IMG/VR virus record: IMGVR_UViG_3300032288_004964
Location: 248,001-312,000 of that record
Reading direction: 5' to 3' (one strand)
DNA length: 64,000 nt
The position numbers and the translations under genes were made by a program. The notes under the pieces were generated by a model that saw only the letters and a list, made by a program, of their open reading frames with translations, did not search any database and had not been told where the DNA came from. Of the stretch, positions 6,321 to 39,292 are shown one piece after another (the stretch's first letter is position 1; every line of letters begins with the position of its first letter).

Positions 6321-6406
6321 AGTATTATATATTAAATTTGAAAATATTTAAATTATTTTTAAAAAATAACAAAACAAAGAATAAATATTTAATATATAGT
6401 ATATAT

Positions 6407-6502
6407 TGCGGGGTAGAGAAGTGGTCAACTCGCTAGGCTCATTTTAGACTATCTAATGAAGAAATAACCTAGAGATCACAGGTTCGAATCCTGTCCCCGC
6501 TA
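6407..6502 (+). tRNA. Initiator-type tRNA-Met(CAT) with 23-nt insertion in the anticodon loop
   Basis: TGCGGGG/CCCCGCT acceptor with 1:72 mismatch; CTAGG-CTCAT[23 nt]AA-CCTAG; GGTTCGAATCC. Confidence 0.8.
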
Positions 6503-6992: not shown

Positions 6993-7078
6993 GCTACGGT
7001 ATGCAAACCGGAATAAGCGACCAGACTTTCAATCTGGACATCGAAAGATGTGTGCGGGTTCGAGCCCCGTCCGTAGTA
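6993..7078 (+). tRNA. tRNA with TTC (Glu) anticodon and long variable arm
   Basis: ccaga-CTTTCAA-tctgg; acatc-gaaa-gatgt V-arm; A73. Confidence 0.8.
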
Positions 7079-7081
7079 CAA

Positions 7082-7743: not shown

Positions 7744-8373
7744 TTATATATCAGAGTCACTCCTAAGTAATCCACACTTTTGACACTCTTCAAATCCATC
7801 ACCATCTTTATCTCCCCAAATGTGTTCACAATTTCTGTGTTCAAAATATTCATCAATATCCCCATCACCATCAGTATCATATCCGTCATTAACACCATCA
7901 CCATCTTCATCAACTTCAACCTTTTCAAAAACAGGTTTTGACTCGACTGGAATATTAACTACTTCAGTTTTTCTTTTCATTGATGATGTATAGTCAGGCA
8001 TAACTGTTTCTTTCTTTGGTTCATCCGGAAACTCACCTGCTTTTGAAAGTGACATTCCATCCTCTTCATCAACTTTTTGAATTAACATTTTATCTCTATC
8101 TTCTGAATTAAATCAATAATCAATAACTTTATTTAAATTACCAACAAAAGCACCTAATAAAATTAATAACATTTCTTTCCAGTCCTCTCCAATTGATATT
8201 CCAAAAAATACCGCTGAATTAATACCAACAATTATAAGTATAAATATACCTAATACTATGGCGGTTATTCTCCATCTATTTGCCTGCATTTGCTGAAGCA
8301 TATAATAAAATCTATTTTTATCTTCAACTTTTATATAATCTGTTTTACTACTAAAGAATTTTCCCAATCCCAT
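7744..8373 (-). CDS. Two-TM membrane protein with acidic DxDGDG C-terminus, interrupted by an in-frame TGA at 8113-8115
   Basis: ORFs 8113..8373 and 7744..8088 share a frame and are joined by TGA-TTT-AAT-TCA-GAA-GAT-AGA-GAT-AAA. Confidence 0.6.
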
Positions 8374-8476
8374 AATTAATTTTTATTTTTATATATTAAT
8401 TTAAAAATAAAAAAAATAAAAAAATTATTAGGGGGAGTGAAACTTTTTATATATATTTGTATAAGAGATTAAAACT

Positions 8477-8560
8477 ATGAAAAATTTACATAACATATCA
8501 ATAGCGATTATAGCGGGCGGCGCGGGGAGCGACTGTCATTGGCTGAGTTATGTGTTGTAA
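8477..8560 (+). CDS. Attenuator leader peptide 2 (Ile/Ala/Gly sensor) MKNLHNISIAIIAGGAGSDCHWLSYVL
   Basis: ATA/GCG/GGC/GGG codon run; followed by a terminator and Ile/Gly/Ala tRNAs. Confidence 0.85.
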   Translation: MKNLHNISIAIIAGGAGSDCHWLSYVL

Positions 8561-8587
8561 ATAATAAATATATTTATAATAATATTG

Positions 8588-8618
8588 AAACCCAGTCACA
8601 AAATGACTGGGTTTTTTT
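8588..8618 (+). terminator. Attenuator terminator 2
   Basis: aaacccagtca-caaaa-tgactgggttt plus U tract; tggctgagtt (8540-8549) can pair with the 5' arm. Confidence 0.85.
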
Positions 8619-8627
8619 AATTTATAT

Positions 8628-8701
8628 AGGTGAGTAGCTTAGATGGTAAAAGCATGTGTCTTATACACACAAGATAGTGGGATCGTTACCCACCTCACCT
8701 A
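8628..8701 (+). tRNA. tRNA-Ile(TAT)
   Basis: tgtgt-CTTATAC-acaca; T-loop ATCGTTA. Confidence 0.85.
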
Positions 8702-8929
8702 CTGAAAAAAATAAAAATGAAAGGAAAAATGAAAAGTTGAAATTGAATTGTTGGTTTATTTATAGATGTGTTAATAGTAATATCTATTTTCACCGTGTTA
8801 AATAAGAATATTAAATGTCGTATTTATGAAAATGAATATGAGACATGGGTACCTGACTTAAACGGTAACATACAACGTAAAGAAACTAAAACAATTGTTA
8901 TTAACTTCTTAAGAAGATTAGGATAACAA

Positions 8930-9050: not shown

Positions 9051-9133
9051 GCGGGTGTAGTATAGTGGAGGCGAAAGCCGTATTATATCGGTCTTCCAAA
9101 CCGAAGATGTGAGTTCGATTCTCATCACCCGCT
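9051..9133 (+). tRNA. tRNA-Gly(TCC) with D-loop hairpin insertion
   Basis: tcggt-CTTCCAA-accga; ggc-gaaa-gcc in the D-loop. Confidence 0.85.
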
Positions 9134-9592: not shown

Positions 9593-11056
9593 TTAAGATA
9601 TTTTAATTTTCATTTTTGTTCCGGTGTCTATTTTATCACAGGATAAATCAAATTTGTGTTCTTTTAATATGGCAAAACAGATATTTAGTCCAAGCCCGGA
9701 TTCACTTTCTTTCTCTACTGAATAAGAAGATAATATTTTATCAAATTTATTTTGAGTCAATCCTATACCATTGTCTTCAATAATTAAATATTCATTCTCC
9801 ATGTATATTTTAACTTTTTTACTTTCGCTTTTATTATATTTTAAACCATTTTTTATTAGATTATCAATAGCGTTCCAGAAAAGTGTCTCATTTACTATAG
9901 CATTTGGTAAATCTTCGACTTCTACTTGTGTAGAATATGATGTTGTGAGAATACATCTATTTAATAAATCTTTTAAATTTACATCAGTTTTATCTAACAC
10001 TACATTTTGTTTAACAAGATTGGTAAACTCATATACCGACTTATAAACTTTTTGAGTATGATTAAGTCCTTCTTTAATCATTTTAACTGGTCCATCAATT
10101 TTTAATTTTTGTAATTCTTCTGGAGTAACTCTTTTCTCTAAAGAGTTTATACCTCGAGGAATATAAGTATTTATACCAGAGTGCATATCATGTCTAATAA
10201 TTCTAGCGGCATGTTCTAAATAAGTATTCTTTTTATTAATATCTCTTAGTTGTTTTTCAATTTCTTTATCTTGTACTTTAATTGTTTTTCTTTGTAAAAG
10301 AGCAAGTATAGAAAGCCCCATAATTGAAGCACATATAATTGCCCATATTAAATAAGTTCTTAATTTTGATTTTTGAACTTCTAAATCTTTATTTTCTACT
10401 TGTAACTCTCCTTTAACAACAGTAAGATCTATTATGTCTTTTTCTTTAGATAATGTTTTAATTGTACCTGTCTTAGAATCTATTACTTGTTGATTAGCAT
10501 TAGCCTTTTGTAGTGAATCTTTTTCAAATATTAATTTTTTAATTTTGTTATCAATTTCTTCAGCTACCTTTTTTAAGTCTTCTTTTGATAAATTATCATA
10601 AGATTGTGGAAGATTTTTAATAAAATTTTGGTCATTCTTAACTTGATTAGCTTCATTTTCATCTAATTCTGCAGGAGTAGGTGCGGGTACCATTATCTCT
10701 TTGATAAGATAAATATACTCTTTAGAAGCAGATATTTGTGATTCAATAGGACGTATTTTTGAGTTAATAGACTTGTTGAACCACCAATTAGCTCCCTCAA
10801 ATTCTTTTCTCGAATAAAGAGCCAATCCTATTTCTAAACTAATTGATTTTTCTTCAGGTGATAATTCCGAATTTTCGCTATCTCTGATTTTATAGATATC
10901 AATTTTATCCATAAGATTATTAATGTAATTATCATCTGGGCAAATAGGAACTCCTTGGTCCCAAACAGATTCAACACTTTCTGTTGTATCTATCTTAGTT
11001 TGTGAATAAGAGGCCAAACAGATAAGGCTAAATAATATTAAGAAATATTTTTTCAT
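9593..11056 (-). CDS. Membrane sensor histidine kinase
   Basis: Signal peptide, TM helix, H-box RHDMHSG, N-box NLIKNGLKY, G1 DNGIG, G2 GLGL. Confidence 0.85.
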   Translation of the reverse strand: MKKYFLILFSLICLASYSQTKIDTTESVESVWDQGVPICPDDNYINNLMDKIDIYKIRDSENSELSPEEKSISLEIGLALYSRKEFEGANWWFNKSINSKIRPIESQISASKEYIYLIKEIMVPAPTPAELDENEANQVKNDQNFIKNLPQSYDNLSKEDLKKVAEEIDNKIKKLIFEKDSLQKANANQQVIDSKTGTIKTLSKEKDIIDLTVVKGELQVENKDLEVQKSKLRTYLIWAIICASIMGLSILALLQRKTIKVQDKEIEKQLRDINKKNTYLEHAARIIRHDMHSGINTYIPRGINSLEKRVTPEELQKLKIDGPVKMIKEGLNHTQKVYKSVYEFTNLVKQNVVLDKTDVNLKDLLNRCILTTSYSTQVEVEDLPNAIVNETLFWNAIDNLIKNGLKYNKSESKKVKIYMENEYLIIEDNGIGLTQNKFDKILSSYSVEKESESGLGLNICFAILKEHKFDLSCDKIDTGTKMKIKIS

Positions 11057-11153
11057 AGTGGTTGTATAATTTATTTTTAAAAAACTTCTTCAATCACTAT
11101 ATATATTATTTCAGGATTGAAAAACCTTTATAATATTATAATATATAATTTAT

Positions 11154-11291
11154 ATGAATGAGGAAATTGAAAAAATACTAAAAGAGATTGCTGAGAAAAA
11201 TATAGAAAAATTTGGACCACTTCATGAAGAATGTGGGATGTATCAATATTTCTGTAGATGTAAAACTAATGAAAAAAATCCACTTATATAA
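11154..11291 (+). CDS. Small hypothetical protein (45 aa)
   Basis: MNEEIEKILKEIAEK...; TAATATATA motif upstream, terminator downstream. Confidence 0.5.
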   Translation: MNEEIEKILKEIAEKNIEKFGPLHEECGMYQYFCRCKTNEKNPLI

Positions 11292-14750: not shown

Positions 14751-14833
14751 GGTACTGTGGCCGAGCGGTGTCGAAAGACGAGAGGCAGTAGTCTGCAAAA
14801 CTACTCACACTGGTTCGAATCCAGTCAGTACCT
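14751..14833 (+). tRNA. tRNA-Cys(GCA) with D-loop hairpin insertion
   Basis: gtagt-CTGCAAA-actac; U73; gtc-gaaa-gac in the D-loop. Confidence 0.85.
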
Positions 14834-16464: not shown

Positions 16465-17922
16465 ATGAAAAATATTGTAACAAGAATTGCTCCTTCTCCA
16501 ACTGGTAAGTTTGTCCATTTAGGAAACTTAAGAACTTTACTTTATAATTACTTCCTTGCTAAAAGACACGGTGGTAAATTCCTTGTGCGTTTAGAAGATA
16601 CTGACCGTGACCGTTATACTCCAGAATTTCTACAATATTTTAAAGATACTTGTGATTGGTTAGGAATTGTACCTGATAATTCTTTTTGGAATCCAGATCC
16701 ATCAATTGGTTCATTTATTCAATCAGAAAGAGATTATTCTGACAAAGTTAAATTTCTATTAGATAATGGATTGGCTTATTATGCTTTTGATACAAAAGAT
16801 GATTTAGATATTTTAAAGTCTAAAGGTCTTAAATATGATGCAACCACTCGTATGTCTATGAATAACTCATTGACAAGACCTGATACTGATATTAATTCTG
16901 TTCCTTATGTTATTCGTTTTGCTGTTACACCAGATGTAGATATTACTTTTACAGATGCAATCTTAGGTGATATTACTATTAACACAAATACTTTAGATGA
17001 TAAGGTTTTAATTAAATCCAATGGTATTGGTTCTTATCATCTTTGTAATGTTTGTGATGATCATGATATGAAAGTTACTCATGTTCTTCGTGGACAAGAA
17101 TGGGTAAATTCTACTCCTTTTCATATTCTTATGTATAAAGCATTTGGTTGGGATATTCCTACTTTTGCTCACTTACCTCTAATTATGAATCCTGATGGTA
17201 AAGGTAAACTAGCAAAAAGAACGGCTGCTAAATATGGTATTCCTATTGCGCCACTTGGTTATACTGATGATAATGGAGTCTATATCCCAGGTTGGAAAGA
17301 TTTAGGTTATGATCCTAAGGCATTTATCAATTCACTTGCTTTAATTGGTTGGAATCCTGGTAATGATGTTGAAGTTATGTCCTTAGATGATATGATTAAT
17401 TCATTTTCATTAGACAGAGTTCATAAATCAGGTGCTCGTTTTGATATTGATAAAGCAAAATGGATTAACTCACACTATTTAAAGGCTACTGATAATAAAG
17501 ATTTAATTCCTTTTGTTAATATTGTGGATAATAGATATTCTAATGATAAATTAGATAAGATTATTACTTTAGCAAAAGATAGAGCTACTTTTAAGACAGA
17601 CTTAAATAATATTGTTGATTTGTTTTTTGATACACCTGTTATTACAGACTATTCAAAAATTGATGATAACTATATAAAAGTAATGTCTAGTTTTGTTGAT
17701 AATATTGACTCTGTTGATTTCAATGATACTGATAGTATTAAATTAACAATTTCTTCTATCTGTGATGGGTTTGGAATTAAGATTGGTAAAGTAATGCCTG
17801 GTTTGAGAATTGCTTTAGTTGGTGGAATAAGTGGACCAGATTTAATGACCACGATGTCAATTCTTGGTAAAGACCAAGTAAAATTGAGAATTCTTAACTC
17901 TACAAAAACAGTTACTGTATAA
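16465..17922 (+). CDS. gltX: Glutamyl-tRNA synthetase
   Basis: RIAPSPTG, HLGN (HIGH), RLEDTD, DDHDM-VTHVLRG, KLAKR. Confidence 0.92.
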   Translation: MKNIVTRIAPSPTGKFVHLGNLRTLLYNYFLAKRHGGKFLVRLEDTDRDRYTPEFLQYFKDTCDWLGIVPDNSFWNPDPSIGSFIQSERDYSDKVKFLLDNGLAYYAFDTKDDLDILKSKGLKYDATTRMSMNNSLTRPDTDINSVPYVIRFAVTPDVDITFTDAILGDITINTNTLDDKVLIKSNGIGSYHLCNVCDDHDMKVTHVLRGQEWVNSTPFHILMYKAFGWDIPTFAHLPLIMNPDGKGKLAKRTAAKYGIPIAPLGYTDDNGVYIPGWKDLGYDPKAFINSLALIGWNPGNDVEVMSLDDMINSFSLDRVHKSGARFDIDKAKWINSHYLKATDNKDLIPFVNIVDNRYSNDKLDKIITLAKDRATFKTDLNNIVDLFFDTPVITDYSKIDDNYIKVMSSFVDNIDSVDFNDTDSIKLTISSICDGFGIKIGKVMPGLRIALVGGISGPDLMTTMSILGKDQVKLRILNSTKTVTV

Positions 17923-22044: not shown

Positions 22045-22091
22045 ACCCACTTTTGTGGGTTTTTTTATGATACATTTTTAATATATAGAAT

Positions 22092-22820
22092 ATGAAACAT
22101 ATTAAAAAATTCAATGAAAATAAAGTATCAATTTTTGATTCTTCTGAATGGCTAAAACTTCTACCTAAAAAATTAACTATTATTAATCAAAATGGTGAGT
22201 TTACACTAGATGTTAGAGGTTTAGATCCAGAAGATGGTTATTCTGGTGTGTATAATTTGATGAATTCTATTTCTATTTCTTATTCTCAAAATACTATTGA
22301 GAAAGAAGATGATGATCCAACGGCTGATGGTGAACCAGATAGTCTTCAATTTGATATTTCTATTGTTAAAGATAACAAAGGTGATGAAGCAAATCCTTCA
22401 AATTCTTTAAGATTAAATATTGACTTAACATATGGTGACTCAATGATGTATGAGTTTACAATTGATTATCCAAATAAAGTAAATGTTCATCATTATAATG
22501 GTAAAGATTCTTTATATGATCCTGAAACATACTTTGGATTTTCTGATGAGTCATTAAAGGAATTAGTTAATTTTTTCAATAGATTTGGATTCAATACTAC
22601 TACAGATGATTTTAAATTTATAGATAGTGATATAGATAGTTATGATTATAAACATCCTACTGAAAAGTATTTAAAAGACCCTCAAACAATCGGTAATAAA
22701 TTAATACCTATGATTATGGATGATGAGATGAAATCAGAGATTGATACTCTAAAAGGTGGTGATAAGATCAAAAGATATCATGAATTTGATTTTAAAAAGA
22801 AAAATAATTTGGCGGATTAA
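22092..22820 (+). CDS. Hypothetical protein, paralog of 15597..16247
   Basis: MKHIKKFNE start; TAATATATA upstream. Confidence 0.75.
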   Translation: MKHIKKFNENKVSIFDSSEWLKLLPKKLTIINQNGEFTLDVRGLDPEDGYSGVYNLMNSISISYSQNTIEKEDDDPTADGEPDSLQFDISIVKDNKGDEANPSNSLRLNIDLTYGDSMMYEFTIDYPNKVNVHHYNGKDSLYDPETYFGFSDESLKELVNFFNRFGFNTTTDDFKFIDSDIDSYDYKHPTEKYLKDPQTIGNKLIPMIMDDEMKSEIDTLKGGDKIKRYHEFDFKKKNNLAD

Positions 22821-22987
22821 AAAATCTACCTTATATTTGTGAAACAATTGGGATGGGAAACGATTCAGATACAAGTCTCAATTTTTTTTTACAAAAATAA
22901 TTTGGCAGATATAAAACTTTTTTCTATATTTGTATAAAATAAGAACAAATAACAAAAAGAGAGAATAACTTTATAATATATACTGAA

Positions 22988-23086
22988 ATGAAAAACTTAA
23001 ACTTAAATATCGTTAACCCGCAACCTCAAGTTGTAATCGATCAGGATCCTGATACGATAGGGGCTAACTATGTGGTTTTAAGTTAA
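22988..23086 (+). CDS. Attenuator leader peptide 4 (Pro/Gln/Asp sensor) MKNLNLNIVNPQPQVVIDQDPDTIGANYVVLS
   Basis: PQPQ..DQDPD run; followed by a terminator and Asp/Pro/Gln tRNAs. Confidence 0.85.
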   Translation: MKNLNLNIVNPQPQVVIDQDPDTIGANYVVLS

Positions 23087-23110
23087 AGAATAATATTAAC
23101 TATGAAACGT

Positions 23111-23150
23111 AACCCAGTTAGTCGAAAGATTAACTGGGTTTTTTGTTTTT
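23111..23150 (+). terminator. Attenuator terminator 4
   Basis: aacccagttagtc-gaaa-gattaactgggtt plus U tract; ggctaact (23062-23069) pairs with agttagtc. Confidence 0.85.
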
Positions 23151-23223
23151 TATAAATTATAGAAATGAGTATATAAAAATAAAAAGTACTCTTTAGAGAA
23201 TAGAGTAAAAGAATTCTCAAATT

Positions 23224-23297
23224 GGTTCGTTAGTAGAGTTGGTTACAATATCGCACTGTCACTGCGAAGGTCACGGGTTCGAATCCCGTACGAACCG
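23224..23297 (+). tRNA. tRNA-Asp(GTC)
   Basis: tcgca-CTGTCAC-tgcga. Confidence 0.9.
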
Positions 23298-23302
23298 CAA
23301 AA

Positions 23303-23374
23303 GGTCTTGTCGTCCAATGGTAGGATAACCCGTTGTCTGCGGGAAGGTTGTGGGTTCGAATCCCATCAGGACCG
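23303..23374 (+). tRNA. tRNA-Asp(GTC)
   Basis: cccg-TTGTCTG-cggg; G73. Confidence 0.8.
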
Positions 23375-23383
23375 CTAAAATTT

Positions 23384-23456
23384 CGGGGTGTAGCGCAGTT
23401 GGTAGCGCGCCTGGTTTGGGACCAGGAGGTCGTCAGTTCGAGCCTGGCCACTCCGA
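23384..23456 (+). tRNA. tRNA-Pro(TGG)
   Basis: cctgg-TTTGGGA-ccagg. Confidence 0.9.
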
Positions 23457-23469
23457 CAAAAAATTAAAA

Positions 23470-23554
23470 CGAGATGTAGCCTAGAGGTTTCCGTATGGAT
23501 AAAGGCACTTGGTTTGGGACCAAGACGACGCAGGTTCGAATCCTGCCATCTCGA
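23470..23554 (+). tRNA. tRNA-Pro(TGG) with D-loop hairpin insertion
   Basis: cttgg-TTTGGGA-ccaag; tcc-gtat-gga in the D-loop. Confidence 0.85.
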
Positions 23555-23585
23555 CAAAGAAAAAAAATATTAATAAATAGAAATT

Positions 23586-23639
23586 ATGAGAACAACAACA
23601 CAATACCAACAACAACAACAAATTAATCCAACAGATTGA
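23586..23639 (+). CDS. Attenuator leader peptide 5 (Gln sensor) MRTTTQYQQQQQINPTD
   Basis: Six CAA codons; followed by a terminator, two tRNA-Gln and glnS. Confidence 0.9.
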   Translation: MRTTTQYQQQQQINPTD

Positions 23640-23667: not shown

Positions 23668-23702
23668 AAACCCTACTCAATCTGATTGAGTAGGGTTTTT
23701 TT
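23668..23702 (+). terminator. Attenuator terminator 5
   Basis: aaaccctactcaat-ctg-attgagtagggttt plus U tract; cagattga(23632)/tcaatctg(23677) antiterminator. Confidence 0.9.
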
Positions 23703-23704
23703 AT

Positions 23705-23778
23705 TGTCCGGTGGCGAAATTGGTAGACGCACTAAGCTTTGACCTTAGTTTTTGTAGGTTCGAACCCTACCCGGACAG
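23705..23778 (+). tRNA. tRNA-Gln(TTG)
   Basis: ctaag-CTTTGAC-cttag. Confidence 0.85.
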
Positions 23779-23785
23779 CAACAAT

Positions 23786-23857
23786 TGGAAAATAGTATAA
23801 TGGTTATTATTTCTGACTTTGAATCAGAAGATACAGGTTCGATCCCTGTTTTTCCAA
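23786..23857 (+). tRNA. tRNA-Gln(TTG)
   Basis: tctga-CTTTGAA-tcaga. Confidence 0.85.
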
Positions 23858-23876
23858 CTAAAAAAATATAAAAATT

Positions 23877-25511
23877 ATGAATTTCATAGAAGAAAAAATA
23901 TTAGAAAAAGGAAATCTCGATAAGTTAAAACTTCGTTTTCCACCAGAACCAAATGGGGCTATACTAAACGATGGTAGAGTTGTCGGTGGTCTTCACTTAG
24001 GACATGCTAAATCCATTATACTAAATTTTGGATTAGCAGAAAAGTATAATGCTACATGTGTGTTAAGGTTTGATGATACAAATCCAACTACTGAAAGAAA
24101 AGAGTTTGTAGATTCAATGATTGAGGATATCAAATGGCTTGGTTATACTCCAAGTGAAATCAGATACACATCTGATTATTTTGATTTTCTTTATGAATGT
24201 GCTGTTACTTTAATTAAGAAAGGATTAGCTTATGTTGATGATTCAACATCTGAAGAAATTGCTAACTTAAAAGGAACTCCAACTTCAGTTGGTAAAGACT
24301 CACCTTATAAATCTAGAAGTATAGAAGAAAACTTAGACTTATTTAATAGAATGAGATTAGGTGAATTCTATGAAGGTTCTAAAATCTTGAGAGCCAATAT
24401 TGATATGACTTCTCCTAATATGATTTTAAGAGATCCGGTTCTTTACAGAATAATATCTAAGTCACATCACAGAACTGGTGATACTTGGAAGATTTATCCA
24501 ATGTATGACTTTGCTCATCCACTTTCAGATTATAAAGAAGGTATCACTGATTCCCTTTGTACTTTAGAATTTGAAGTTCATAGACCTTTATATATGTGGG
24601 TCTTAGAAAATTGTGATTTAGAAAATTCTTTACCAGAAGAAACTGAGTTTGCTCGTTTGAACATTGACTATACGGTTATGTCAAAGAGAAAACTAAAAAG
24701 ATTAGTTGAAGAAGGATTTGTTGATGGGTGGAATGATCCAAGAATGCCAACTATTTCTGGTTTAAGAAGAAGAGGTTTTACTCCAAACGCTATTAAAGAT
24801 TTCTGCGATAGAATTTCTGTTACCAGAAAAGAATCAGTTGTTTCTTATTTGCTTTTAGAAGAATGTTTAAGAACTGATTTGAATATAGTTACCAATAGAT
24901 TAATGGGTGTTATGGATCCAGTTAAGTTAGTTATTACTAATTGGGATAGCGGAACTGAAATGGTTGAAGTTGAAAATAATCCTGGCGATGAAAGTGCTGG
25001 AGTGAGAATGATTCCTTTTAGTGGTGAATTATTTATTGAAAGAGAAGATTTCAGAGAAGAAGCCAATAAAAAATTTCATAGATTGAAATTAGGTGGAGAA
25101 GTAAGACTAAAAGGAGCTTATGTTATTATGGCTAACGAAGTTATCAAAGATGAATTTGGGGAAATCACTGAGATCAGATGTACTTATGATCCTTTAACAA
25201 GATCGGGTATGACTTTTGAAAGAAAGATTAAAGGAACTATTCACTGGGTATCTGCTGAACACGGAGTTAGAATGGATGTAAATGAATATGATAGATTGTT
25301 CAATGATGAATCACCAGATAAAAATGAAGATGATTTTATCAATTATATCAACCCAGATTCACTTATAATTAATGATAAGGCAATCTTTGAACCTCACGTT
25401 TTAAACGTCAAGGCACCAGTTCAAATGATGAGAAAGGGGTATTATATTTTAGATACTGACGGTAAAAGTTTCAATAAAACGGTAAGTTTGAAAGAAGGTT
25501 GGGTAGGTTAA
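23877..25511 (+). CDS. glnS: Glutaminyl-tRNA synthetase
   Basis: RFPPEPNG, HLGH, RFDDTNP, YPMYDFAH, MSKRK, GWNDPRMPT. Confidence 0.95.
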   Translation: MNFIEEKILEKGNLDKLKLRFPPEPNGAILNDGRVVGGLHLGHAKSIILNFGLAEKYNATCVLRFDDTNPTTERKEFVDSMIEDIKWLGYTPSEIRYTSDYFDFLYECAVTLIKKGLAYVDDSTSEEIANLKGTPTSVGKDSPYKSRSIEENLDLFNRMRLGEFYEGSKILRANIDMTSPNMILRDPVLYRIISKSHHRTGDTWKIYPMYDFAHPLSDYKEGITDSLCTLEFEVHRPLYMWVLENCDLENSLPEETEFARLNIDYTVMSKRKLKRLVEEGFVDGWNDPRMPTISGLRRRGFTPNAIKDFCDRISVTRKESVVSYLLLEECLRTDLNIVTNRLMGVMDPVKLVITNWDSGTEMVEVENNPGDESAGVRMIPFSGELFIEREDFREEANKKFHRLKLGGEVRLKGAYVIMANEVIKDEFGEITEIRCTYDPLTRSGMTFERKIKGTIHWVSAEHGVRMDVNEYDRLFNDESPDKNEDDFINYINPDSLIINDKAIFEPHVLNVKAPVQMMRKGYYILDTDGKSFNKTVSLKEGWVG

Positions 25512-25882: not shown

Positions 25883-25992
25883 ATTAATTATATAATATAG
25901 TATTTATTAGTTTAAAGTATATCATGATGATACATGAATTTGCTTTTATTAGTTAAATTTTTTTCTTATATTTGTAAATAATATATAATTTA

Positions 25993-32529: not shown

Positions 32530-32559
32530 TCTGGGTTTTTTATTTTAATATATACTCTT

Positions 32560-33411: not shown

Positions 33412-33610
33412 AACTTCCTTTAATTTTTTTATAGAAATTTTACAAAAAATTTGGTGAGATTAAAAATCCTCCTTATCTTTGTATAAGAAATCAGAAATGA
33501 TTTTAGTTCATTGAAATAGTTTATTGAAAATATACCAAAACGGTGAGAGATATTAAAAGTAGTACACTAAGTACGAGCTCATATGGGAGGCTGTCACCGT
33601 CCGCAAATTT

Positions 33611-33695
33611 GAGGAAGTTCCAGAGTGGTCAAATGGGGCTGTGTAGTAACACGGCTGACTTTTAGTCTTCAGAGGTTCAAATCCTTTCTTTCTCA
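33611..33695 (+). tRNA. tRNA-Tyr-like with 8-nt anticodon loop
   Basis: gctgt-GTAGTAAC-acggc; long V-arm; A73. Confidence 0.6.
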
Positions 33696-33785
33696 CAAAA
33701 AATATTTTGAAAAACATTTGGTAGAATAAAAAAAAGTTTCTATCTTTGTAAAACAAAATTAAAAGGTATTATATAAAAAACATAT

Positions 33786-33861
33786 TGCGGGAGGGTGAAA
33801 CGGAAAATCATTCCAGGCTCATAACCTGACGAGATACTTGGTTCGACTCCAAGTCCCGCTA
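33786..33861 (+). tRNA. Initiator-type tRNA-Met(CAT)
   Basis: cagg-CTCATAA-cctg; 1:72 mismatch. Confidence 0.75.
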
Positions 33862-33895
33862 CTAAAAAAAGTTTTTATAAATTTTTTACAAAAGA

Positions 33896-33976
33896 TTTGG
33901 ATAATTAAAAAAAAGTTTCTATCTTTGTAAAACAAAATTAAAAACAAAACTATAAAAATAGTTCTTTAACATATTG
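33896..33976 (+). promoter_or_regulatory. Host-type promoter followed by a boxA-like element
   Basis: tttggataatt...tatctttgta, then gttctttaacatattg; the promoter is nearly duplicated at ~33717. Confidence 0.65.
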
Positions 33977-33979
33977 AAA

Positions 33980-34840
33980 TTACAGAAATAATGACTTCGG
34001 TCATTAAAGTAAGTAGGGCGGCTTATAGTCCATAAATAATCTCTGAAAGGAGGATAAAGTGATCACAAATGCTAAATGTGATTGCGGCTTGACCGAAAGG
34101 TTGAGCTCGGGTAAGCGAGTGGAATACCATTATTCCTGAGTAGCCGAGGGTAACACTGTAGGCGAAATGGTTTAGTGATTAGGCGATGTAGATCGTCTGA
34201 TTGACTTCGGAAGAAGAATAGGAATAATCCATAGGAATCTTTGCAAGAAGTGGTGACCCACCAGTTATCATCATTGCGAATTCCAACTTGAGAGGTATCT
34301 CAAAGTCGAAAGACAATTTAGTGTACAGGTGGTGCTGTTACTAAACACTAAACTGACTACCAAGTCGGTGACCTTGCTAAGGTGAGGTCTGGTGAAGATA
34401 TCTTAAAGAGTTGTGATGGAGGCATCACACGGAGTAGTCTAGTATTCTTGAGGCCAAAAGCTTTGGGAACTAAGAGATAACCACTACTTCGACAAAATCT
34501 ACAGCACTAAAATTTACTTTTTGACGTAAAAATTAAAACTTAAATCGAAAGTGTTATCTAGTTACTGATAGAAAGGTACCTACTTAGTTATGGGTTGTCC
34601 ATAGCCACATAAGTCCGAAAGACTGGTGTGATTTTACCGAAAAGCTTATAGGGGGTCGAATCCCGAACTAGCCTGCGAGGGTTGGATAAGTAGAGTAAGT
34701 AGAGAGTATTCAGTGACTCAAGGGGTGGTTAGTCTAACTAACCGGTACTGACAAGATACCATTCAAAAGATGGTGGATAGATTTGGGAATACATAATCCA
34801 AACAAAGACTTGTCATATTAAGATGTAATCTCAGTCTTTT
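33980..34840 (+). ncRNA. Large structured ncRNA, GOLLD-like
   Basis: ~850 nt with no ORF in the track, higher GC than flanks, many GNRA/UUCG-capped hairpins, flanked by tRNAs; family name is from size and context only. Confidence 0.6.
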
Positions 34841-34844
34841 ATTT

Positions 34845-34920
34845 GGTCAGTTCGTCTAGCGGCATTCAGGACGGATATCTATTCAGATATCAAACATTGG
34901 TTCGAATCCAATACTGACTA
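34845..34920 (+). tRNA. tRNA-Glu-like with 8-nt anticodon loop
   Basis: gatat-CTATTCAG-atatc; normal D and T arms. Confidence 0.6.
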
Positions 34921-34999
34921 CTAAGTTTTCGTAGTGGTTAACTTACTCCGAAAGGGGGGTCTGTCAATGACAGTGTGACTACCTCAAAGTCACACATAT

Positions 35000-35099
35000 G
35001 GCCCGTTAGTCTACAGGACTCGCAAGAGAATCAGATTTATCTGATTAGGACGGTCAACTTTTCGGTTGATAGATATTGGTTCGAATCCAATACGGGCTA
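35000..35099 (+). tRNA. tRNA-Glu-like with 8-nt anticodon loop and two hairpins in the D-loop
   Basis: gtcaa-CTTTTCGG-ttgat; nested in a 10-bp stem 34925/35124. Confidence 0.55.
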
Positions 35100-35133
35100 C
35101 AGAAATCACGGTCTTTTGACCGTCTACGAAAAC

Positions 35134-35162
35134 ACCCACTAATTATTTTAGTGGGTTTTTTG
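35134..35162 (+). terminator. Intrinsic terminator ending the ncRNA operon
   Basis: acccactaa...ttagtgggt plus U tract. Confidence 0.75.
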
Positions 35163-37156: not shown

Positions 37157-39292
37157 ATGATAAATGAAAAATTAGATGGTAGTGAATACCTAAAAAATCT
37201 TCCTGATGTTAAAGCATCATTAGAAGATGATGAGGACGAAGATAAGTCTTTTAGTTCTAAAAAACCAGACAGTAAGTCTAAGACTCCCGTTTTAGATACT
37301 TATAGCCGTGATTTAACCAAAATGGCTGAAGAAGGAAAACTAGACCCTATTGTTGGTAGAGAAAAAGAAATTGAAAGAGTTTCTCAAATTCTTTCACGTA
37401 GAAAGAAAAACAACCCAATTTTAATTGGTGAACCAGGTGTTGGTAAATCTTCAATTGCTGAAGGATTAGCACTTCGTATTATCCAAAGAAAAGTAAGTAG
37501 AATTCTTTTTAACAAAAGAGTTGTAATGTTAGACTTGGCTTCAATGGTTGCTGGTACTAAATACCGTGGTCAATTTGAAGAAAGAGTTAAGGCTTTAATG
37601 GGAGAACTTGAAAAAGAACCAAATGTAATTCTTTTCATTGATGAGATTCATACTATGATTGGTGCTGGTGGAGCATCAGGATCATTAGATGCCTCTAATA
37701 TGTTCAAACCCGCTTTAGCAAGAGGTGAAATCCAAATCATTGGTGCTACTACTTTGGATGAATACCGTAAACACATTGAGAAAGATGGAGCTTTAGAAAG
37801 AAGATTTCAGAAAGTTATGGTTGAGCCAGCTTCTCCGGAAGAAACTTTACAAATCATTTCTAACATCAAAGACAAGTATGAGTCGCATCACAATGTTACT
37901 TATACTGAAGAAGCTATCAAAGCTTGTGTTGATTTAACTTCTCGTTATATGAATGATAGATTCCTTCCAGATAAAGCTATTGATGCTTTAGATGAGGCTG
38001 GGTCTCGTGTTCATATCTCAAACATTGTAGTTCCTAAAGAAATCACTGATATTGAAAAGAAAATTGTAGATATCAAGGATAAAAAGAATGAAGTAATTCG
38101 TTCTCAAAAGTATGAAGAAGCTGCTAAGTTAAGAGATGTTGAAAGACAATTAAATGAATCTTTAGAATCAGCTAGAAAAGCTTGGGAAGAAGACTCTTCT
38201 AAAAACAGACAAACTGTTACAGAAGATAATGTTGCTGAAGTTGTTTCAATGATGACTGGAATTCCTTTACAAAAAGTAACTCTTAATGAAACTAACAAGT
38301 TAGGTAAAATGCAAGAGTCTATTATTGGTAAGGTAATTGGTCAAGATGATGCTGTTAAAAAGATTGTTAAAGCAATTCAAAGAGGTCGTGTTGGTCTTAA
38401 AGATCCAAACAAACCAATTGGTTCATTTATGTTCTTAGGACCAACTGGTGTAGGTAAAACACAATTAGCTAAGGTATTGGCTAAGTATCTATTTGATTCA
38501 GAAGATTCTTTAATTAGAATTGATATGTCTGAATATATGGAGAAATTCGCAGTATCTCGTTTGATTGGAGCTCCTCCAGGATATGTTGGACATGATGAAG
38601 GTGGTCAATTAACTGAAAAAGTTAGACGCAAACCTTATTCAGTTGTTCTTCTTGATGAGATTGAGAAGGCTCATCCTGAAGTGTTCAACTTATTACTTCA
38701 AGTTTTAGATGATGGTCAATTAACTGATTCATTGGGTAGAAAAGTTAATTTCAAAAACACTATCATTATTATGACTTCTAATACAGGTTCACGTCAATTA
38801 AAAGACTTTGGAACTGGAGTTGGTTTCTCCACTAAGAACAGAGAAAGTAAAGGACAAGAAGAATCAAATGCTGTTATTGATAAGGAATTAAAAAAGAAAT
38901 TCGCACCAGAATTCTTAAACCGTATTGATGATGTGGTTATGTTTAACTCTCTTGTAAAAGAAGATATTAACAAGATTATCTCTATTGAGTTAGAAAAGTT
39001 AGTAGGCCGTGTCCAAGAAATGGAATACAACTTAGATATCACATCAGAAGCTGTTGATTATATTGCATCTGAAGGATTTGACCCAGAGTATGGAGCAAGA
39101 CCTTTGAAGAGAGCAATTCAAAGATTAGTTGAAGATGTTCTAACCGAAGAGATTATTCAAAGTAATCCGGATAAAGGATCTAAACTTTCTTTAAGTTATA
39201 ACAAAGAAGAAGAAAAGATGGTTGTTCAAATTACCCCACCTGAATCTAAAGTTGCTAAGAAAAGAGCACCTAAGAAAAAAGATGATAAGTAA
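37157..39292 (+). CDS. clpC: ClpC-type AAA+ chaperone lacking the N-terminal Clp-repeat domain
   Basis: Two Walker A motifs ([16 protein letters not shown]); UVR middle domain YEEAAKLRD; GVGF ClpP-docking loop. Confidence 0.85.

Follow-up and report, generated by a model that had tools for sequence, protein, structure and literature searches.

A leader-peptide element that most likely attenuates transcription of tRNA genes in a huge freshwater phage

The DNA analysed here (the window, W) is a 64,000-nucleotide stretch of AT-rich phage DNA from fresh water, identical to part of IMG/VR contig 3300032288_004964 (385 kb). It carries about 30 tRNA genes, a GOLLD RNA, and genes for GlnRS, GluRS and a ClpB-like ATPase. 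Within it, a short ORF encoding MKNLNLNIVNPQPQVVIDQDPDTIGANYVVLS contains a run of 12 codons, nine of which specify Pro, Gln or Asp. The ORF (leader 4) is followed by a strong intrinsic terminator and then by four tRNA genes. The fourth of these was called Ser(gga) by ARAGORN; however, the Rfam alignment shows that it is tRNA-Pro with an insert in the D loop, and the order Asp/Asp/Pro/Pro given in the original prediction is therefore correct. Thirty bases further on, with no terminator in between, lies a second leader (leader 5, MRTTTQYQQQQQINPTD), followed by its own terminator, two tRNA-Gln genes and the GlnRS gene, identified by a Pfam match (PF00749, 3e-93). A scan for terminator-like sites found 4 in 2.5 kb, against 0.6 expected, and the hairpin after leader 4 is of the strongest kind in the region. 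Upstream of leader 4 are a match to the Bacteroidota-type promoter pattern TTTG-N20-TAnnTTTG (14 in the window against 4.1 expected) and a copy of the motif TAATATATA (16 against 7.65 expected). All of the sequence features named in the original prediction were confirmed. Their coordinates are collected in Table 1.

Table 1. Coordinates, within the 64,000-nucleotide window, of features in the two consecutive leader/terminator/tRNA units
Feature	Position	Strand	Details
Host-type (Bacteroidota-like) promoter motif	22901-22932	+	TTTG-N20-TATATTTG; expected transcription start near 22939
Phage start-site signal	22974-22982	+	TAATATATA, 5 nt before the leader 4 ATG
Leader ORF 4	22988-23086	+	32 codons plus TAA (23084-23086)
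Region 1	22993-23019	+	Proposed 5' strand of the anti-antiterminator; pairs with 23061-23085 in the modelled fold
Regulatory codon cluster	23018-23053	+	P Q P Q V V I D Q D P D (CCG CAA CCT CAA ... GAT CAG GAT CCT GAT)
Local hairpin in the D-Q-D-P-D codons	23036-23058	+	Palindrome ATCAG-GATC-CTGAT; may be a pause hairpin
Region 2	23061-23085	+	May pair with region 1 or, through 23061-23078, with the terminator 5' arm at 23110-23124 (antiterminator, -12.7 kcal/mol)
Proposed antiterminator core	23062-23069	+	GGCTAACT; complementary (one G-U) to AGTTAGTC at 23116-23123, in the 5' arm of terminator 4
Intrinsic terminator 4	23111-23151	+	13-bp stem (23111-23140, -19.4 kcal/mol) plus T tract
Two tRNA-Asp (GUC) genes	23224-23375	+	23224-23298 and 23303-23375
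Two tRNA-Pro (UGG) genes	23384-23555	+	23384-23457 and 23470-23555; the second has a 14-nt D-loop insert
Variant of the start motif	23571-23579	+	TAATAAATA, one mismatch, 6 nt before the leader 5 ATG
Leader ORF 5	23586-23639	+	17 codons, six of them Gln (p = 1.3e-6)
Intrinsic terminator 5	23668-23705	+	14-bp stem (23668-23698) plus T tract
Two tRNA-Gln (UUG) genes	23705-23858	+	
Glutaminyl-tRNA synthetase gene	23877-25511	+	18 nt after tRNA-Gln, in the same unit

The codon cluster in leader 4 is unlikely to have arisen by chance. Nine D/P/Q codons in a window of 12 occur in 25 of 10^6 random peptides of this genome's composition (p = 2.5e-5), and leader 4 is the only one of 561 short ORFs (15-45 codons) in the window to reach this count. 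For Asp and Pro alone (6 of 12), the value is p = 0.0075. Enrichment of D/P over the whole peptide is weak (p = 0.12), and the signal lies in the cluster. Whole-peptide tests dilute the signal of short codon windows, and the first and fourth leaders of the window and the leaders designated L013c and L007a are individually not significant by this measure.

The window contains five units with the same design of short ORF, terminator and tRNA cluster. In addition to leaders 4 and 5, these comprise a leader containing YYYEE before Glu/Tyr tRNAs, one containing ISIAIIAGGAG before Ile(UAU)/Gly/Ala tRNAs, and one rich in T, I, N, L, M, V, C and R before Asn/Arg/Leu/Val/Ile/Thr/Cys/Met tRNAs; several tRNAs missed by ARAGORN were read from the Rfam hits. 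Related huge phages were retrieved through GlnRS, GluRS and a neighbouring ATPase. Searches anchored on GluRS and the HATPase mostly hit phages without nearby tRNAs, a near-identity search of GenBank phages found nothing useful, and a terminator-pattern scan added one lineage (L132; lineages are numbered with the prefix L). The Asp/Pro unit is conserved in 11 phage lineages whose GlnRS is 57-96% identical, and a TAnnTTTG box lies 50-80 nt upstream of all 11 homologous leaders. The relatives include two published but unannotated genomes of 635 and 642 kb (LR745206.1 and LR756502.1), which hold homologous units. Further types were also found, with leaders containing KHKHFSKLNKWF before Phe/His/Phe/Lys/Lys/Lys, SSRSRSSKS before Arg/Ser/Arg, and HQLSHSRRLSSLLL before Ser/His/His/Arg/Leu/Leu/Ser. 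By contrast, a metagenome scan with a GlnRS alignment returned 78 cellular GlnRS loci and only 2 phage loci, and no tRNA-Gln or leader lies upstream of the cellular glnS genes.

Across the family, leader codon content tracks the downstream tRNA set. For 11 non-homologous unit types, comparison of the amino acid content of each leader with its own ARAGORN tRNA set gave a Fisher p = 3.5e-14. None of 200,000 permutations of leaders among units reached the observed score, and the leader's own set ranked first for 8 of 11 leaders. The correspondence extends to the codon level in the Arg(acg)/Arg(tcg) unit of LR756502.1, which uses CGT, CGC and CGA, while AGA makes 86% of Arg codons in the window's ORFs. 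Not every tRNA in a unit has codons in its leader (Glu in L005), and some leaders carry orphan codons (Asp in L013).

Modelled folding of the leader 4 RNA gives the classical 1:2, 2:3 and 3:4 alternatives. The unconstrained fold contains a long helix between the 5' part of the ORF (region 1) and its 3' part (region 2), together with the terminator. A 30-nt ribosome footprint was then masked with the A site at 23018-23048, and the RNA made before the 3' arm of the terminator was folded. Under these conditions, the nascent RNA forms the helix 23062-69:23116-23, which involves the antiterminator ggctaact named in the original prediction. With the ribosome at the stop codon, the 1:2 helix persists and the terminator arm is free. 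The extended antiterminator is more stable than shuffled sequences (p = 0.03), and the equivalent duplex is worth -10 to -15 kcal/mol in all 11 lineages. Its core, GRCTAAC:GTTAGTC, is kept even where the terminator stem is built differently (L008 and L005). The 2:3 helix is nearly invariant, however; it shows a few one-sided, pairing-compatible changes (G-U to A-U, C-G to U-G and A-U to G-U) and no double compensatory changes. RNAalifold on nine Asp/Pro leaders recovered only the terminator and a small hairpin, and gave no formal covariation support for 1:2 or 2:3, in an alignment in which MAFFT misaligns L008 and L005. At the family level, the terminator 5' arm pairs with the upstream segment more than shuffles do in 33 distinct units (mean z = -2.4, 22 of 33 at p <= 0.05), although the result for W leader 4 alone is not significant (z = -0.69). 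Likewise, the 5' end of the ORF pairs with its 3' end in 15 of 20 units (p < 0.05), using different sequences, but not significantly in W alone (z = -1.08, p = 0.15). This pairing would explain the conserved MKNxxNI...NYVxxS ends of the leaders, since AACATA pairs with TATGTT.

Several features suggest that the leader is read as codons. It is kept as an ORF in 11 lineages, across which Pro is preserved through CCG, CCT, CCC and CCA changes. The leader 4 ATG also has a gene-like start context, with the same spacing from TAATATATA as 9 long ORFs. Eleven of 16 exact copies of this motif lie 4-7 nt before the ATG of an ORF, often just after a terminator, and one lies 8 nt before a tRNA; one-mismatch variants are rarely placed in this way. 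We read the motif as either a phage promoter that gives near-leaderless RNAs or an initiation signal. Contigs of 90-95% relatives from three RNA libraries cover 22859-23156 and GlnRS but not the flanking ORFs, a pattern that cannot separate transcription from divergence or DNA carry-over.

Taken together, and on sequence evidence alone, the region 22901-23555 is best explained as a ribosome-mediated (leader-peptide) transcription attenuator that governs four phage tRNA genes, a reading we consider likely. In the proposed mechanism, transcription starts at the host-type promoter, at the phage-type start motif, or at both, and a ribosome translates the leader. If charged tRNA-Pro, tRNA-Asp and tRNA-Gln are plentiful, the ribosome would run to the stop codon and cover region 2, or region 1 would re-pair with region 2; the terminator hairpin would then form and RNA polymerase would stop at about 23150. 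If one of these tRNAs is scarce, the ribosome would stall within 23018-23050, keeping regions 1 and 2 apart, and region 2 would pair with the 5' arm of the terminator, allowing polymerase to read on into the tRNA genes. Stalls at the last Pro/Asp codons (23048-23053) would partly cover region 2. Translation of the leader, stalling, read-through and the identity of what is limiting (tRNA rather than amino acid) are inferred.

The original prediction further proposed that two attenuators act in series and that the Gln codons of leader 4 sense Gln for the nested tRNA-Gln unit. The tandem arrangement is real: the units lie on the same strand, and there is no terminator or host-type promoter between tRNA-Pro and leader 5. 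The same transcript could thus run into leader 5, where a run of Gln codons would make a second, Gln-only decision about tRNA-Gln and GlnRS; terminator 4 would open on Asp, Pro or Gln shortage and terminator 5 on Gln shortage only. Comparative data support this reading. All 11 Asp/Pro leaders are Gln-rich (1-5 codons; 38 of 342 residues, or 11%), against 4 of 494 residues (0.8%) in 17 leaders of other families. The number and place of the Gln codons vary (PQPQ..DQD, QNPQQPQ, PQQQP, QVQRQ..DQDQ), which argues for maintenance rather than inheritance alone. In every lineage, the Asp/Pro unit lies upstream of the Gln unit and GlnRS on the same strand, with no predicted terminator between them. The two units abut in W, L002, L003, L133 and L134. 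Elsewhere, non-homologous ORFs are inserted between them: a DUF559 endonuclease-like gene that runs in frame into the Gln leader in L011 and L014, a class II aaRS in L005, and unknown ORFs in L006 and L008. Adjacency is therefore probably ancestral. Gln leaders that abut tRNA-Pro have no TAnnTTTG box, whereas three that are separated by an insert (L006, L008 and L032) have one. The series reading with Gln sensing is therefore plausible but unproven.

The strongest alternative accepts the attenuator but holds that the Gln codons of leader 4 are not sensors for the downstream unit. They would be a relic of an ancestral unit that held a tRNA-Gln, or be kept for RNA structure, and unit 5 would be driven by its own phage-type start signal. 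In keeping with this, L008/L016 has a tRNA-Gln as the first tRNA of the Asp/Pro unit, the CAG of D-Q-D lies in the palindrome, CAA pairs with GTT codons in a small hairpin, and the L013 leader shows that orphan Asp codons occur. Furthermore, TAATAAATA precedes the leader 5 ATG in W, L002, L003 and L134, so an independent promoter for leader 5 is not excluded. However, Gln content stays high (mean 3.5 codons) in 10 lineages without an in-unit tRNA-Gln, whereas a relic should decay, and other leader families are poor in Gln. One-mismatch variants of the motif are rarely start-associated (TAATAAATA: 1 of 8), and L133 lacks even the variant. We regard this alternative as possible but doubtful.

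It is less likely that the element reports amino acid starvation or general translation capacity, as classical attenuators do, with the tRNA genes simply its cargo. A stalled ribosome cannot, in principle, tell a missing tRNA from an uncharged one, and GlnRS is co-regulated with tRNA-Gln. Against this, making more tRNA does not relieve amino acid starvation, and the tRNA-by-tRNA correspondence across 11 or more unit types, including the anticodon-box match for Arg, fits feedback on the tRNA itself. A chance ORF, or an unrelated small gene with its own terminator and tRNAs transcribed from elsewhere, is very unlikely. Short ORFs are abundant in AT-rich DNA and the W-only structure tests are weak, but this reading does not account for the codon/tRNA correspondence, the conservation of the ORF with changing codon windows, the absence of a promoter motif in the 83 nt between the terminator and the first tRNA, or the lack of the arrangement at the 78 cellular GlnRS loci. 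A ribosome-independent, T-box-like sensor shares the regulatory logic but is the least likely, given that cmscan of the whole window at gathering thresholds returned only GOLLD and tRNA (no T-box, RF00230), that the codons are in frame within an ATG-to-stop ORF with a gene-like start context, and that synonymous third-position changes keep the amino acid rather than the sequence.

Leader-peptide attenuators of amino acid operons (trp, his, leu) typically combine a short leader ORF with clustered cognate codons, an intrinsic terminator and mutually exclusive 1:2, 2:3 and 3:4 pairings, and one leader may sense several amino acids, as in thr (Thr, Ile) and ilvGMEDA (Leu, Val, Ile). The element described here differs in that it lies in a phage and its regulated genes are tRNA genes rather than those of biosynthetic enzymes; region 1 lies mostly upstream of the regulatory codons, and the leaders form one modular paralogous family with a swappable codon window. 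No match to the curated Rfam leader families (His, Leu, Thr and Trp leaders, Bacteroid-trp) was found. In E. coli, pheST appears to be controlled by the pheM leader, rich in the cognate codon, which parallels the Gln leader before GlnRS; in pheST, however, the aaRS alone is controlled, whereas here the tRNA genes come first and unit 4 holds only tRNAs. T-box riboswitches likewise use the status of a specific tRNA to decide between terminator and antiterminator, but probably bind tRNA directly, without a ribosome, through a defined Stem I/T-box fold. Large phages, including T4, T5 and huge phages such as LR745206.1 and LR756502.1, carry tRNA arrays with aaRS genes, but full-text literature searches found no report of attenuators in front of phage or cellular tRNA genes.

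We consider it somewhat more likely than not that huge Bacteroidota-infecting phages run a modular tRNA homeostat, in which each paralogous leader transcribes a given tRNA set (and the matching aaRS) only when ribosomes stall for lack of that tRNA, and in which units can be chained so that an upstream gate (Asp OR Pro OR Gln) feeds a downstream gate (Gln). To our knowledge, this would be the first case of tRNA genes under ribosome-mediated attenuation, and it could be a built-in answer to host tRNA depletion or cleavage during infection. If real, phages would measure the supply of individual tRNAs with the ribosome itself and top up only what is missing, which would give a concrete regulatory reason for the large tRNA and aaRS sets of huge phages. 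It would bear on whether phages carry tRNAs for codon-usage matching or to replace those lost to host shut-off or anticodon nucleases, would show that unannotated published megaphage genomes contain this layer of regulation, and would offer compact, programmable tRNA-specific sensors and chained attenuators that work as logic gates.

We also asked whether CAG codons in the Gln leaders track the presence of tRNA-Gln(CUG). The result was 4 of 4 against 3 of 6, a difference that is not significant.

The GOLLD RNA (RF02032, 270 bits) sits among tRNA-like genes, each of which is preceded by a TTTGG..TATCTTTG host-type promoter motif and not by a leader ORF. Thus, not all tRNA genes in this window are under attenuators. 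Many of the phage's tRNAs carry inserts; for example, the second tRNA-Pro has a 14-nt insert in the D loop, and several of these genes were miscalled or missed by ARAGORN. The motif TAATATATA occurs at 16 sites in the window. It lies 4–7 nt before the ATG of 11 ORFs, often straight after a terminator, and 8 nt before the tRNA that starts at 6407, and is probably either a phage promoter giving leaderless RNAs or a start signal. Just upstream of the promoter of leader 4 (the leader ORF of the Asp/Pro unit), a second host-type promoter motif is followed by about 50 nt and a T9 run. A similar stretch is present in L008, one of the related phage lineages.

Regulatory windows within the leaders favor codons that are rare in this genome. 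CCG, which makes 3% of Pro codons, is present in all 11 Asp/Pro leaders, and leader 2 uses GGC, GGG, and GCG. This preference could reflect either sensitivity or RNA structure.

The same units are held by two published, unannotated phage genomes of 635–642 kb, LR745206.1 (L135) and LR756502.1 (L136), and these include new types. In one new type, a K/H/F-rich leader precedes Phe/His/Phe/Lys x3; in another, an S/R-rich leader using CGN codons precedes Arg(ACG)/Ser/Arg(UCG). In the related lineage L005, a class II aaRS (tRNA-synt_2b plus HGTP_anticodon, possibly ProRS) follows the two tRNA-Pro genes, which mirrors the position of GlnRS after tRNA-Gln. In two further relatives, L011 and L014, a DUF559 (endonuclease-like) ORF is inserted between the Asp/Pro and Gln units. 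This ORF runs in frame into the Gln leader and shares its stop codon, so its ribosomes would reach the Gln run directly. The phage under study also encodes a GluRS-like enzyme and a ClpB-like double AAA ATPase.

Coordinates of additional features in the window and in related phages
Sequence	Positions	Feature
Window	34430-34837 (context 33450-35150)	GOLLD RNA
Window	33450, 33717, 33896	Host-type promoter motifs before tRNA-like genes
Window	23470-23554	Second tRNA-Pro
Window	6407-6502, 6993-7079, 9051-9133, 14751-14833	Other tRNAs with inserts
Window	e.g., 22079-22087, 25979-25987, 32546-32554, 6390-6398	TAATATATA motif
Window	22808-22890	Second host-type promoter motif (22808-22839) and following stretch
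Window	e.g., 8504-8530 and 23018-23020	Regulatory codons
Window	16465-17922, 37157-39292	GluRS-like enzyme and ClpB-like double AAA ATPase
L136 (LR756502.1)	7931-8900 and 10421-11200	Leader units, including new types
L135 (LR745206.1)		Leader units, including new types
L005	4390-5496	Class II aaRS
L011	4759-5688	DUF559 ORF
L014	4757-5683	DUF559 ORF
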